This document shows, piece by piece, positions 16,000 through 63,263 of a stretch of DNA of 64,000 bases (positions are counted from its first letter, which is position 1; each line of letters starts with the position of its first letter). The DNA lies in the sequence record OP599913.1; one strand, given 5' to 3'. A program made the position numbers and the translations under genes. The notes below the pieces were generated by a model. It saw only the letters and a program-made list of their open reading frames with translations, did no database searches and was not told the origin of the DNA.

Positions 16000-16025
16000 T
16001 TTCAAACCTACATTACCAGGGTGAA
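16000..16025 (+). promoter_or_regulatory. phage promoter (CTACATTAC variant)
   Basis: TTTCAAACCTACATTACCAGGGTGAA heads the small-gene island. Confidence 0.6.
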
Positions 16026-16065
16026 GCACAGACAGAGACCGTTTAACGGTCAAGGAGACTTGTCA

Positions 16066-17104: not shown

Positions 17105-17512
17105 ATGAGTAATGTAATGCACGTTAGCACCATCGCCGGTCGTACCGCCCTGACGGTGATCACACCCGACGACCTGCCGGTTACCAACTGGATGGAAAAT
17201 GTGCTTGCTGCACAGATCCAGAAAGTGGTTGACGAAGGTAAGGGTTGGCCCAACGACGCCGAGTTCAAGGTGGAGGTTACCTACCACACTTGGCCACAGG
17301 GTTGGGACCGGGAAGTGTACACGCACTTCTTTACCAACCGCGCCGAGCTGGACTCCTACATCAAGGACCAGCACGAGTGGGCCCGTTGTGAGGACAACAT
17401 GGTGAAGATCAAGATCTACAACTGGGACCTCGGTCCGAACTTCATGGAAACTCGTGAGTTCGGTGGTCCTGAGTTGTGGAACAGCCCTCTGAGCCGTCCT
17501 TACTTGACGTAA
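17105..17512 (+). CDS. early hypothetical protein (135 aa)
   Basis: AGGAG RBS, high-expression codon bias. Confidence 0.82.
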   Translation: MSNVMHVSTIAGRTALTVITPDDLPVTNWMENVLAAQIQKVVDEGKGWPNDAEFKVEVTYHTWPQGWDREVYTHFFTNRAELDSYIKDQHEWARCEDNMVKIKIYNWDLGPNFMETREFGGPELWNSPLSRPYLT

Positions 17513-17520
17513 GGCTAGCG

Positions 17521-17566
17521 CTACCTCCCTGCCAGTGGCAGGGAGGTAGTACTCCTTTTATTTTTT
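17521..17566 (+). terminator. intrinsic terminator
   Basis: CTACCTCCCTGCC-agt-GGCAGGGAGGTAG plus T tract. Confidence 0.85.
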
Positions 17567-17612
17567 GCTTCATTTCCATTTTTATAGTTCACTCAACACA
17601 ACGAGCAAAGTA

Positions 17613-17753
17613 ATGCCTGACACTAACAACGGTCCTGTGGAAATAAAGATGGAACGTGTGCAGTTCAAAAGAATAAAAGTAAGGGGTCTTCGTAAATTCT
17701 GGTTACTCATCAAACGCTTACTGAGTAAGGACACCGATTATAAGAACACTTGA
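17613..17753 (+). CDS. small cationic amphipathic peptide (46 aa)
   Basis: In frame with ORF 17565..17753; weak RBS; KRIKVRGLRKFWLLIKRLLSK. Confidence 0.4.
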   Translation: MPDTNNGPVEIKMERVQFKRIKVRGLRKFWLLIKRLLSKDTDYKNT

Positions 17754-17805
17754 CGAACGCATGGCTAAGTCAATGGAACTAAGGGTAATTAACTTCTAGT
17801 TGTAA

Positions 17806-17829
17806 TCAGGTCTATATTACCTTTGTGTA
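17806..17829 (+). promoter_or_regulatory. early promoter TATATTAC
   Basis: TCAGGTCTATATTACCTTTGTGTA upstream of the RHH gene. Confidence 0.72.
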
Positions 17830-17888
17830 TATTAAGGCGTGGTTGCCTTCCTATTTTTAAGACCGAATAAACACAAAGGATGTTATCT

Positions 17889-18236
17889 ATGAGTCAAGTC
17901 AAGAAAGCGATGAAAGGTGTTCTGAAAGGTAACAGTCGAACGGCCGATAAGTTTGTATTATGGATGCCAGTTGAGCTACGCGATAAGGTTAGCGAACGCG
18001 CAACGGCCAATGGGCGGAGTATGAATGCTGAATTTATCATGCTCATACAGGCTGCGATAGCCAGTGGGAACACAGGTGGAACCCAAATAAGGACTATTCC
18101 ATCGGTAGGTGACCCTGTTCGGGTTGAAGGGCTCCCAGGTGTGGTGACTGAATTGATACCGACACCGACTGGATTAAAGATCCGGGCAAAAACCTGTGAG
18201 GGAGAGGATATTTATTCGTTATGGGAGATTGTTTGA
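17889..18236 (+). CDS. Arc/AmrZ-family ribbon-helix-helix protein
   Basis: [34 protein letters not shown] versus P. aeruginosa AmrZ [34 protein letters not shown] (recalled); AAAGGA RBS before ATG 17889. Confidence 0.85.
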   Translation: [115 protein letters not shown]

Positions 18237-18237
18237 T

Positions 18238-18438
18238 ATGACTCGTTTCGAGAACTCGGATAAGGAAAAGAAACCCAGTGTTCCTTTGCAGAACAAAATC
18301 GGGTTTGCGGGGATAGGGCCCGACGATGAGCCCATGTCGTGGACACTCACCCTCCCCGGTGAAAACTCGGTGGGTTACGCAGAACCCTTTCGACCTGAGA
18401 AAGAAGACCTGATCCCCCAACCGGTCTCTTTCGATTAA
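18238..18438 (+). CDS. small hypothetical protein (66 aa)
   Basis: ATG 1 nt after the upstream stop, GGGAG RBS, followed by a terminator. Confidence 0.6.
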   Translation: MTRFENSDKEKKPSVPLQNKIGFAGIGPDDEPMSWTLTLPGENSVGYAEPFRPEKEDLIPQPVSFD

Positions 18439-18450
18439 AAGCGTTGTATA

Positions 18451-18500
18451 CCCCTACCCAGCCCTTTTCGGCTGGGTAGGGGTTAATCTCTTTATTTTTG
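18451..18500. terminator. bidirectional terminator
   Basis: CCCCTACCCAGCC/GGCTGGGTAGGGG plus T tract between convergent genes. Confidence 0.8.
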
Positions 18501-19574: not shown

Positions 19575-22397
19575 TTAAAAGAGTGAGAGAACACTCCGGG
19601 AGGTATACAAGGAATGGGTTTCAGGTTCATCCCCCATATCAAACATTTCTTGGCCGGTGATATTACCCAACAACTCATGGCCCTGTTCTTTACTCATAAG
19701 AATGTCCACTTGTTCCTTAGACCATTCCATGATGTTAATACTGCGGGTCATAATGTTGAGTTTATCCCCGGTGTCCATATCCAAGAGTTTAAAGTAACAG
19801 GGAGCATCCTGACCAGTACGCCAGGTACGGGCTTGGACCTGTTTCACTTCATACTCCCGGAAAGGCGCATTCAACAGAATGGTCAGGTTCGCCATAATCA
19901 AGGGATACCCTTCCTTCAGGGAATCAAAGATCGCAATCAACGCACGGAGAGTGGGGTCTTTCTCAAAGCGTTTGATATTGGTGTCTCGTTCGTTGCTGTT
20001 TTCACCGTATACTGTCACATTCGGATACCCGGCCTTCGTGAGGTATTCCTCGCAGAGTTTAAGGGCATCCACGTAGGAGGTAAAGATCAGAGTCTTCTTC
20101 TCCACGTTATCGATGAGCTCAGGGAGTCCTGCGTGCGCGATGGTGTCCTTAATAGCGTTAATACGGGCTCGTCCTAAAACGTTCCCTAAGGCCTCTCCAC
20201 GCAGTTTTAGACCCAAGTACTTAACCGCAGACTTAATGTTCCTGAAATCCTTCAGGGCGGTCCCTTTAAGGCCCTTCTCGATGTCTTCTTCCACCCGCTT
20301 ACAGAACTGACTGTCTTGGTTATCCGTAAAACTGTTATACCCCCGGGTTCTGAACCGGTGAACAATCTGTTTGTACTTCAACAGATTCTCAACCGCTTTA
20401 GCATTCCCCTGGATGGACAGTTCATACGACGTCAGAACATCGTTGTAGAATTCCAAGAAGCTCGGCATGTGTTTCGTATAGAACGCAATCCGTTCTCCAA
20501 TGTAAATCTGCATTTGGAGGCGAATAGCATCCAAGGTGTATTGATCCGAATTCGGGATCTTCACCTTAACCAGTTCCATAGGAGGAGGATCGCCCAATCC
20601 CACCAGTTCAGGAATGGTGAACTTCATACGTCCAATACGTCTACTCAGCAAATCCATTAACGAGGGACGGTTACGTCCATAGGACGCCATAAAGAACTCC
20701 CGAGCCTTCTTATCGAAGTAGGGATCGATCATACAGGTCGTTGGGAAGATTTCACTCCCCTGAGCCTTTAGCGGCGTCCCTGACATCGGAAGGTGATGCC
20801 CGAACAGTTCCATGTCGCACCATTCGATCAACTTCCGTGTACGGGCTGCTTTAGGGTCATTGAAGTTCTGGGATTCATCCAGAATCATCTTCAAAGCGCC
20901 TTTATGCTTCTTACTCAGCGCAATGAGGAAGTTCTCCAAGTATTTCCCCATACCACTGGTCATGTAATCGTAATGGACGATGTAGAAGTCATACCCTTCT
21001 TCTAAGACCTTACCGCTGATACTGGTCCAGATACGGGGTGGAACCTTAAAGTGCTGGAGGGGTTGTTCTACCCAGACTTTATCCACAATGTTCATAGGGC
21101 AAAAGACAACCGTCGGAGCCGTATTGATCAATTGAGACCACGCCAAGGACGTAAAGGTATTGTGGGTCACGATGTAGTCATCCACCACATACAGCTTCTC
21201 GTCATTATCCAAGGCAATGCAGCAAGTCTCTTGATTCTCCACTTTCTCCCAGTACGCCAGCTTCAGTTGCAGGTCTTCATACTGGGAGAAGTTATACATT
21301 CCTTGAATACGGGGATTGTCTCCAATTAACCCAGTCATCATCTTGCCGACGTCTCGGTGCTTAAAGTCAACCTTATACAAACCGTTAACCAACACTGGCT
21401 CCGTAGCTGTTCCTCCAATGGACCACATCAACCGACGGAAGTTCTCCATCCCAATCCGGTTCTCGTGATACGCGGATAAGACGGATTCACTGATTAAACA
21501 CCCCACGTGTTCAATCACCGATGTGACTATATTAAAGCGATCCCGATACGGGAGCTCCAATACGTTGTCCCCTATTACAACGTCGGTATTGACCAGCTCC
21601 CTTGCAGCGACTTCAGAAGACGTATCGCAATGGGGGTTGCATCCATTGATCTCACCCACTAAGGGGAAGTACACATCCTCTTTACGGGCTTTATGGAGTA
21701 CTTCCAACGTGGTTAAGATTTCATCGACCCCATTCACCGTGGTTTTCCACAAATGATACGGATGAGAGTCAGCCGTTCTACCGTCTTCGAAATAGAAGCG
21801 ATAAACTTCCGTGATCCCCTGGGGGTAAATACTCTCCACACACGCGGTATCGCCTCCAGGGGTCACTACGATATCCTTGACCTTTAGGTCACCCAAGGCT
21901 TTCCACCCATTCGGGACCTTAACCCGAGTTGAGAGTGGCATGGCTTTCCCTGAACCTGGTTTAGCATCCAGCAGCATCCCTTTCAAGTGATAACTGTTCA
22001 CAATGATCGGGTATTGCTGAAGGAAGTCCAACTGCTGAGGAAAGGGAACTGTGTTGAACTGATTCAGTTTCTTAAGATCGAAGGGTTTACCCCCCGGATT
22101 AACCGTATCTTTAATCCAGGTCTCGGTTTCAATGAGTTCCTTCAGTTCACTCAACGCTCGTCTGCGGGTACGAAGGTTCCGTATTTTGAGGAGTTCCCCC
22201 ACAATGTGGTGCAATTCTACCAGGAAGAAGTTATGCACCTTAATGGTGTCCCAGGATTCGCGTCGAATCTGATGTTTCGTTAAGAGAGAAGTGCTGTAGA
22301 ACTTCTCAATGTCTTTGGCTAAATCGTAATAGGACACGCCCGTAATGTGTACGTAGTCTCCCGTTTGTTTGATCTTAACTGAAAACAGTCCTAACAT
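19575..22397 (-). CDS. SF2 (SNF2-like) helicase precursor containing an intein
   Basis: Walker A PGSGK|T interrupted by intein, LDESQN (motif II variant), MSGTP (III), SLKEG and QARTWRTGQ (V/VI). Confidence 0.9.
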   Translation of the reverse strand: MLGLFSVKIKQTGDYVHITGVSYYDLAKDIEKFYSTSLLTKHQIRRESWDTIKVHNFFLVELHHIVGELLKIRNLRTRRRALSELKELIETETWIKDTVNPGGKPFDLKKLNQFNTVPFPQQLDFLQQYPIIVNSYHLKGMLLDAKPGSGKAMPLSTRVKVPNGWKALGDLKVKDIVVTPGGDTACVESIYPQGITEVYRFYFEDGRTADSHPYHLWKTTVNGVDEILTTLEVLHKARKEDVYFPLVGEINGCNPHCDTSSEVAARELVNTDVVIGDNVLELPYRDRFNIVTSVIEHVGCLISESVLSAYHENRIGMENFRRLMWSIGGTATEPVLVNGLYKVDFKHRDVGKMMTGLIGDNPRIQGMYNFSQYEDLQLKLAYWEKVENQETCCIALDNDEKLYVVDDYIVTHNTFTSLAWSQLINTAPTVVFCPMNIVDKVWVEQPLQHFKVPPRIWTSISGKVLEEGYDFYIVHYDYMTSGMGKYLENFLIALSKKHKGALKMILDESQNFNDPKAARTRKLIEWCDMELFGHHLPMSGTPLKAQGSEIFPTTCMIDPYFDKKAREFFMASYGRNRPSLMDLLSRRIGRMKFTIPELVGLGDPPPMELVKVKIPNSDQYTLDAIRLQMQIYIGERIAFYTKHMPSFLEFYNDVLTSYELSIQGNAKAVENLLKYKQIVHRFRTRGYNSFTDNQDSQFCKRVEEDIEKGLKGTALKDFRNIKSAVKYLGLKLRGEALGNVLGRARINAIKDTIAHAGLPELIDNVEKKTLIFTSYVDALKLCEEYLTKAGYPNVTVYGENSNERDTNIKRFEKDPTLRALIAIFDSLKEGYPLIMANLTILLNAPFREYEVKQVQARTWRTGQDAPCYFKLLDMDTGDKLNIMTRSINIMEWSKEQVDILMSKEQGHELLGNITGQEMFDMGDEPETHSLYTSRSVLSLF
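21159..21944 (-). mobile_element. class 3 intein (262 aa) in the helicase P-loop
   Basis: Starts with Ala after GSGK, ends VTHN before Thr+1; WCT triplet: HLW (block B), TCCIAL (block F), VTHN (block G). Confidence 0.92.
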
Positions 22398-63136: not shown

Positions 63137-63182
63137 CTACTGCCTAGCCGTAATGGGCTAGGCAGTAGGTTGTCGTATTTTA
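63137..63182 (+). terminator. intrinsic terminator
   Basis: CTACTGCCTAGCC/GGCTAGGCAGTAG stem. Confidence 0.7.
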
Positions 63183-63194
63183 ACTTGCATGTTC

Positions 63195-63220
63195 TTTGAG
63201 GTCTATATCACTAGGGTGAA
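63195..63220 (+). promoter_or_regulatory. early promoter variant TATATCAC
   Basis: TTTGAGGTCTATATCACTAGGGTGAA. Confidence 0.68.
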
Positions 63221-63263
63221 TAAGGCATTGGTTTCCTTAGTCAATTAAAGGAGGATATGCTCT

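Follow-up and report, generated by a model that had tools for sequence, protein, structure and literature searches.

The stretch analysed here, called the window below, comprises 64,000 nucleotides (nt) of sequence record OP599913.1 and derives from Pseudomonas phage EL (Elvirus, filed under Chimalliviridae in newer records). Subtracting 148,027 from an EL position gives the window position, and identity was 100% over a 2-kb test stretch. The subject of this work is gene gp163 of this phage, which encodes a small two-domain protein. On the evidence described below, gp163 is probably a long-resident phage regulator of the AmrZ class, of the type represented by gp184 of phage PaBG, and the two changes R25W and G29E found in EL probably weaken or retarget its reading of DNA. 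Phage regulators of the AmrZ class are already known; gp163 is a diverged addition to them from a jumbo phage and no new kind of system. The parts of the gene are as follows.

17889 to 18236, + strand: gp163 coding sequence, 115 amino acids (aa) plus stop (YP_418196.1)
17925 to 18068, + strand: N-terminal arm and ribbon-helix-helix (RHH) domain, residues 13-60
17961 to 17963, + strand: TGG codon of W25, at the position of AmrZ R22, Mnt R10 and Arc R13
18069 to 18089, + strand: flexible Gly/Thr-rich linker, residues 61-67, predicted local distance difference test (pLDDT) score below 50
18090 to 18233, + strand: C-terminal SH3-like small beta-barrel, residues 68-115, four strands, pLDDT about 90

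The RHH domain of gp163 and its register with AmrZ

Residues 16-56 of gp163 were matched by the Pfam family Arc (PF03869) with an E value of 5.7e-14 (52.1 bits, cut-off 20.4), and Arc-like families of PHROG matched the protein at about 1e-13. In the AlphaFold2 model, which was computed from an alignment of 14 relatives, the two helices of the domain extend over residues 28-41 and 45-58. The turn that leads into helix 2 carries the conserved motif R43-S44-M45-N46, which is invariant among the relatives of gp163. The short N-terminal strand of the fold would be paired in a dimer only. The best sequence matches in the PDB were Mnt of phage P22 (1mnt, E 2.3e-6) and AmrZ of Pseudomonas aeruginosa (3qoq, E 3.3e-6). 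The alignment with 3qoq was ungapped, query residues 15-57 falling on chain residues 15-57 with 18 identities in 43 residues, and it contains the run SRTADKFV common to the two proteins. From these matches gp163 is assigned to the RHH proteins of the Arc/AmrZ class, and the initial annotation, which had noted an eight-residue identity with AmrZ, was correct on this point.

The chain index of 3qoq equals the AmrZ numbering plus 3, as verified on S13, R14, K18, V20, R22, E25/R28 and N43 (PMC3325190). Read in this way, S16, R17, K21, V23, R31 and N46 of EL correspond to S13, R14, K18, V20, R28 and N43 of AmrZ. All six, which are DNA-contact or arm residues in AmrZ (PMC3325190), are conserved, and the extended N-terminal arm that bears S13 and R14 in AmrZ is present in gp163 with S16 and R17. 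Among the contact residues only R22 differs, its place being taken by W25, as had been noticed at the outset from the TGG codon; the same position aligns with R10 of Mnt and R13 of Arc. In AmrZ, two 5'-GGC half-sites are recognized by K18, V20 and R22, the last of which forms a bidentate bond to guanine (PMC3325190), in agreement with the three recognition residues named in the initial annotation. Replacement of this residue (R22A) raised the dissociation constant 44-fold and derepressed amrZ (PMC3325190), and the same mutant was used by Jones et al. in 2014 as a DNA-binding-deficient control (PMC3946381). The motif derived from chromatin immunoprecipitation sequencing of AmrZ consists of an A/T-rich segment, GCC and a second A/T-rich segment (PMC3946381) and is too poor in information to be useful for scanning the window. 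The complete K-V-R reading triad is absent from EL (K21-V23-W25) but present in the Arg alleles of phages HHBS8_1, HHBS47_1, MIZ-Pa99 and phiRU.

Occurrence of Trp25 and selection on gp163

The Elvirus genomes divide into two groups at codon 25, with Arg in four of the eight.

Codon 25 TGG (Trp): EL, IR-QUMS-PaBa1 (Iran, wastewater), GXNNE2 and GXNNA8 (China)
Codon 25 CGG (Arg): HHBS8_1 and HHBS47_1 (Germany), MIZ-Pa99 (Iran), phiRU

In a collection of 15 billion proteins 15 Elvirus variants of gp163 were listed, and among the 14 distinct variants that cover position 25, 11 have Arg and three have Trp. Trp is carried by the EL sequence itself, by a 118-aa version of it with a different start and by a protein (P0162) that differs from EL in one further residue; the exact EL protein was found on six contigs. 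It had been suggested initially that the TGG codon, if relatives carry Arg, could be an error. Relatives do carry Arg, but TGG is not an error, because it recurs in isolates of independent origin from three countries and also in the second W variant. In the wider family the column at EL position 25 contains Arg in 177 of 185 domains (96%), and Arg is also found in the nearest relative outside Elvirus (P0003), whose gene has the same SNF2 helicase gene as its neighbour, on a contig that resembles a jumbo phage. By comparison of these sequences, Trp25 is a genuine and derived state limited to the EL sub-lineage.

The only other Trp-bearing domain found belongs to a metagenomic Mnt-like RHH protein, P0088 (L176, positions 1475-1702; contig coverage about 3x), in which Trp occupies the reading position and Glu the position that corresponds to residue 29 of EL. 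An arc-like gene and an antirepressor gene lie opposite its gene, an arrangement known from P22 immI.

The gp163 gene is intact in all Elvirus genomes examined. Pairwise ratios of nonsynonymous to synonymous variation (pN/pS) were between 0.31 and 0.46 for divergent genomes, with lower values in the C-terminal half, and the gene is under ordinary purifying selection. The W and R groups are separated by five nonsynonymous and six synonymous fixed differences (ratio about 0.26). Among the five is G29E, located where helix 1 begins; the family has Gly at this position in 133 and Glu in 21 of 185 domains. Positive selection on the EL branch was considered, and the numbers of nonsynonymous and synonymous changes (five against six) do not support it. 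All 11 fixed differences detected between 17580 and 18449 are located inside gp163, none being upstream and none in the adjacent gene gp164, and gp163 is therefore a local hot-spot of W/R divergence. Across seven Elvirus genomes variable sites numbered 32 in the 348 nt of gp163, 17 in the 201 nt of gp164 and two in the 326 nt upstream of gp163 (17563-17888).

Position of AmrZ among the relatives of gp163

An exhaustive HMMER search of 1.84 billion representatives yielded 183 matches to gp163 at E <= 0.001, nearly all of them through the RHH domain, and a word-based protein search returned two Elvirus clusters only. The exact run SRTADKFV occurs in 20 of 151 representative clusters, close variants of it in many more, and S16, R17, A19, D20, K21 and F22 are each the majority residue of their family column. 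For these reasons the eight-residue identity, which had been taken as a tie to AmrZ, is better regarded as a signature of the subfamily that carries no specific link to that protein. AmrZ itself scored 30.4 bits against gp163, whereas the 150th best cluster scored 35.8 bits, so that more than 150 other clusters rank above it. At this score, and with an identity of 42-45% between the two RHH domains, the view of gp163 as a specific mimic of host AmrZ had to be given up.

A 108-aa AmrZ-like open reading frame (ORF) of P. asturiensis was 45% identical to gp163 over 64 residues, the BLASTP alignment ending at residue 63, before the C-terminal domain. The RHH domain of PaBG gp184 is 75% identical to the product of this ORF. 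A K-x-V-x-R head combined with the ADKFV motif gave at least 600 pattern matches in Pseudomonadales genomes and was found in 266 stretches of viral contigs, many of them on contigs of 220-312 kb. The GC content of gp163 is 47.7%, that of the window 49.5%; the host P. aeruginosa is GC-rich. Recent capture of gp163 from the host was rejected on the grounds of its phage-like GC content and its distance to AmrZ.

The C-terminal barrel and the two-domain phage relatives

In the AlphaFold2 model the strands of the C-terminal barrel comprise residues 76-79, 82-92, 95-102 and 106-110. Foldseek found weak matches to small barrels, with best E values of 0.085 in the PDB and 0.002 in BFVD; among them were a designed SH3 domain, CAP-Gly, the KOW-type domains of NusG, eIF5A and EF-P, and the Tudor domains of UvrD/PcrA. 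None of the matches in the two databases was significant, and no Pfam family covers residues 68-115. The modelled domain is SH3-like as a fold class and has no specific relative, and the beta-rich 'KOW/SH3-like' domain described earlier was thus recognized correctly at the level of the fold.

Many relatives of gp163 share a common layout, which consists of an RHH domain of the AmrZ class, a linker and a small beta domain that opens with a motif containing Trp, Pro and Gly. Such two-domain proteins are encoded on contigs of 221, 237 and 276 kb and include gp184 of PaBG (labelled 'alginate and motility regulator' in GenBank), gp106 of Noxifer, and gp115 of SM1 with its PaMx31-like kin. When a profile of the C-terminal domains of EL, phiRU and P0003 was compared by hhalign with that of other two-domain members, a probability of 84% was obtained (P 7.5e-6, 46 columns), against 0.2% for the reversed control. 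In the BFVD listing of Foldseek for the gp163 barrel the Noxifer protein reached only rank 13, with an E value of 0.012. These comparisons make homology between the C-terminal domain of gp163 and those of the PaBG gp184 group likely, but do not settle it.

The AmrZ homologue of PaBG complemented a delta-amrZ strain and lowered the levels of the Csy complex (10.1101/673095), in agreement with the earlier statement that phage homologues of AmrZ repress CRISPR-Cas. We infer that this protein, amrZ_PaBG of Borges et al., is gp184, because gp184 is the AmrZ-like gene found in the PaBG genome. The same authors reported that mobile AmrZ homologues keep the DNA-contact residues (10.1101/673095). PaBG gp184, Noxifer gp106 and SM1 gp115 resemble gp163 in being genes of lytic Pseudomonas phages with the same two-domain layout, but all three have Arg at the reading position, and the RHH domain of PaBG gp184 is only 39% identical to that of EL gp163. 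AmrZ is similar to gp163 in the N-terminal arm and the RHH domain and differs from it at R22 and in its C-terminal domain, which does not align with the gp163 barrel. Mnt and Arc of P22 (1mnt, 1arq) have the RHH fold and belong to the same Pfam family, and Mnt, the best match in the PDB, like gp163 has a C-terminal domain in addition to the RHH domain, which in Mnt serves oligomerisation (PMC3325190). In contrast to gp163, Mnt and Arc have Arg (R10, R13) in place of W25, their neighbouring reading residues differ from the K and V of EL, and the gene arrangement of P22 immI is absent around gp163. A further phage RHH protein, Gp53 of PhiPA1019, is expressed early and binds the fleQ, pslA, amrZ and ftsZ promoters (PMC13650114, 2026). 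It is of similar size (126 aa) and closer to AmrZ than to Arc, a likeness to gp163 that is drawn from its description (PMC13650114).

Promoter and leader of gp163

The following elements were identified in front of gp163 and, for the promoter core, elsewhere in the window.

17789 to 17827, + strand: phage promoter-like element, TTAAC, 18 nt, CTATATTAC, 4 nt, GTG
1100, 3700, 16008, 16523, 17812, 58437 and 63203, + strand: promoter-core sites, upstream of gp146, gp148, gp159, gp161 and gp163, with two further sites
17820 to 17879, + strand: leader inverted repeat with 14-nt arms, 93% complementarity; as RNA it would pair the Shine-Dalgarno region
17834 to 17849, + strand: perfect palindrome AAGGC-N6-GCCTT followed by a T run; leader hairpin or candidate RHH operator with GGC/GCC half-sites

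The octamer TATATTAC is located at 17813-17820 and is followed four bases later by GTG; the promoter motif lies 61 nt upstream of gp163. There are four occurrences of TATATTAC in the window where 1.23 are expected. A pattern made of the degenerate core and the spaced GTG was found at seven sites (0.05 expected), all on the + strand and all upstream of genes, and the gp163 copy of this pattern spans 17812-17827. The longer form with TTAAC-N18 has four sites where 0.59 are expected, namely those of gp159, gp161 and gp163 and one at 63180. The gp163 element matches the sigma-70 consensus at nine of 12 positions and is invariant in seven genomes except for one site. The gene directly behind one of the core copies, gp146, encodes a GroEL-like chaperonin. 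In the EL record the gp148 and gp159 sites are annotated as 'putative phage promoter', and a third promoter annotated there (33036, upstream of gp179) is a near-variant missed by the degenerate core pattern.

In a published table of predicted promoters, phiKZ is represented by TATATTAC and 201phi2-1 by a longer sequence in which this core is combined with the spaced GTG; the string given there for EL is related (PMC7058600, Table 2). In 201phi2-1 and phiKZ this AT-rich motif, situated some 10 bp ahead of the start site, is associated with early genes (PMC11512511; PMC8244752). The early promoter proposed initially was therefore supported in so far as gp163 has its own copy of the phiKZ-type motif, whereas early expression is suggested by analogy with these relatives. 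A literature search for an EL transcriptome found none.

The predicted RNA fold of the inverted repeat at 17820-17879 has a free energy of -18.4 kcal/mol (z -2.3) and could matter only in a transcript that begins no later than 17820. The palindrome AAGGC-N6-GCCTT is unique in the window (0.15 expected), at least one copy being present in 13 of 100 shuffled sequences, and it also scores as terminator-like. It is a candidate RHH operator, statistically weak, and may be a plain leader hairpin. A 10-nt direct repeat overlaps the gp163 promoter. Hairpins or palindromes are also found early in the leaders of other genes behind the same type of promoter (16008-16060 and 63203-63245), and a site at 63222 resembles the gp163 palindrome. 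This recurrence favours a role of the leader elements at the level of RNA. A search of 17300-18300 against Rfam gave nothing credible, and the conserved region upstream of gp163 was not predicted to form a stable RNA fold (z +1.8). A 46-aa ORF at 17613-17753, annotated in other records, has no family match.

Proposed mode of action and alternative explanations

Like other RHH proteins, gp163 would dimerise through the RHH domain and insert a two-stranded sheet into the major groove, while the barrel could join dimers or bind a partner, which is the role of the C-terminal domain in AmrZ and Mnt. The Arg-type Elvirus alleles, which have the K-V-R head of AmrZ, probably bind half-sites of the GGC type. 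Their candidate targets are host operators of the AmrZ type, which would be accessible in the cytoplasm while the phage nucleus encloses the phage DNA; these proteins might also bind the palindrome in the gp163 leader. A C-to-T transition in the EL sub-lineage would have converted the guanine-reading Arg into Trp, together with G29E. An EL subunit would be expected to lose the bidentate Arg-guanine contact, and on its DNA-facing side a positive charge would be lost (R25W) and a negative one gained (G29E). Because of the missing bond and this shift of charge, the most likely consequence for the EL allele is either much weaker binding to the usual sites or the reading of another sequence.

If gp163 is a regulator of this type, it joins the phage-borne AmrZ-like proteins known to act on the CRISPR-Cas, motility, biofilm and cell division regulons of Pseudomonas. 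The so far undescribed SH3-like C-terminal domain, which takes the place of that of AmrZ, is probably shared by the proteins of several lytic Pseudomonas phages, including the PaBG protein that was tested. The Arg/Trp split between otherwise near-identical Elvirus phages offers a natural comparison for the contribution of the guanine-reading Arg in vivo.

Several observations weigh against the account just given. A hidden Markov model built from the C-terminal domains outside Elvirus ranked the EL domain at the top, but with an E value of only 0.079, and pairwise BLASTP of gp163 with PaBG gp184 gave no significant match in the C-terminal domain. The RHH domain of EL is 42-45% AmrZ-like, compared with 72-75% for the phage homologues that were tested, so that shared targets are not assured even for the Arg alleles. 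Early timing of gp163 is deduced from the likeness of the motif alone. The W-type genes are nearly identical to one another, and selection after the change is therefore not measurable. Finally, P0088 gives a hint that a reading head with Trp may function in an active repressor.

Among the alternatives, it is possible, although it seems less than even, that gp163 acts solely inside the phage and represses its own or other phage promoters in the manner of P22 Arc and Mnt, with no part in the host AmrZ regulon. RHH proteins commonly autoregulate, the unique AAGGC-N6-GCCTT lies just past the promoter motif in the leader of gp163 itself, the direct repeat covers the promoter, and the upstream 326 nt are nearly invariant. 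However, the palindrome is statistically unconvincing, as the shuffled sequences indicate, and may be an RNA hairpin. A small cytoplasmic protein would have to be imported into the phage nucleus, as follows from the assignment to Chimalliviridae, and the closest characterised relatives act on host promoters (10.1101/673095; PMC13650114).

A second explanation, which we hold to be unlikely though not without merit, is adaptive retargeting, in which W25 and E29 form a working head with a new DNA specificity and phages of the EL type regulate other host or phage sites. It is favoured by the persistence of an intact W allele in isolates from three countries, by the second variant with one further change, and by P0088, a candidate Mnt-like repressor that carries this pair of W and E independently; Glu at position 29 is rare in the family and yet accompanies Trp in both cases. 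On the other hand, no base in the 326 nt upstream follows the W/R split, and hence there is no co-varying operator in that region. Moreover, Trp cannot replace the bidentate guanine contact, as expected from the general principles of recognition of guanine by Arg and from the AmrZ structure (PMC3325190), and P0088 is represented by a single contig of low coverage.

Neutral decay, with the W allele as a loss-of-function variant of a dispensable accessory gene, is also unlikely in our judgement. The strong conservation of Arg, the crippling effect of R22A on AmrZ (PMC3325190; PMC3946381) and the two charge-reducing changes on the DNA-facing side of the EL protein would fit such a variant. The gene nevertheless shows no stops, no frameshifts and no excess of nonsynonymous over synonymous fixed differences, and the C-terminal domain stays conserved.

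We regard as unlikely a version in which the paired R25W/G29E change is a natural switch, the product being either a retargeting head that recurs independently in P0088 or a protein that no longer binds DNA and still engages a partner through its SH3-like domain. If this were true, sister Elvirus phages would reprogramme the host differently.

The initial annotation had also considered a dominant-negative Trp subunit that poisons the dimers of host AmrZ, a model in which mixed dimers or tetramers would form. Such an action is very improbable in view of the low identity of the RHH domains (42-45%) and of C-terminal domains that are not related, and nothing but the common RHH fold and that degree of identity speaks for it. 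AmrZ is not a close relative of gp163. RHH dimers are generally intertwined and fold together, and mixing at such a distance is not expected; AmrZ tetramerises through its own C-terminal domain (PMC3325190; Xu et al., cited in PMC13650114), which does not align with gp163. Furthermore, most Elvirus alleles have Arg, so poisoning cannot be the conserved role of the gene. There is a negligible probability that the TGG of the EL record, one transition away from the CGG of the sister phages, arose from faulty sequencing or assembly, in view of the identical codon in IR-QUMS-PaBa1, GXNNE2 and GXNNA8, the six contigs with the exact protein and the further W variant.

Gene context and annotation of gp163

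Two further features were recorded downstream of gp163.

18238 to 18438, + strand: gp164, a 66-aa ORFan that starts 1 nt past the gp163 stop
18450 to 18483, + strand: strong intrinsic-terminator-like hairpin with a 14-bp stem, 10 GC pairs and a T-rich tail, closing the gp163-gp164 unit

A GGA-rich ribosome site is located 9 nt 5' of the gp163 ATG at 17889. The alternative ATG at 17880, used as the start in some records, abuts this site, and 17889 is for this reason the likelier start. Probably gp164 is co-transcribed with gp163, and the transcription unit probably consists of the promoter, gp163, gp164 and the terminator. The product of gp164 had no match in Pfam or PHROG, and the gene is missing beside the orthologue P0003. 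A toxin-antitoxin pair, with gp163 as RHH antitoxin and gp164 as toxin, was considered and was rejected on these two grounds.

Further downstream, gp166 (19575-22397, - strand) encodes an SNF2-type helicase ('DarB-like') of 940 aa; the syntenic helicase beside P0003 has 685 aa (L008, 6425-8482). The Pfam scan of gp166 detected Helicase_C only and no Hint or intein domain. The extra stretch of gp166 starts just past the Walker A motif and ends with His-Asn followed by Thr, which gives it an intein-like look.

The labels of gp163 differ between records and include 'hypothetical protein', 'transcriptional regulator' and 'partition protein ATPase'. The last of these, found in RefSeq NC_007623 and two other records, is wrong: it was copied from the names of PHROGs 2685 and 795, both of which match only the DNA-binding domain of gp163. 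In the record of MIZ-Pa99 (PV472050) two ORFs of the opposite strand are annotated over the gp163 gene, and the phage is filed under Straboviridae.

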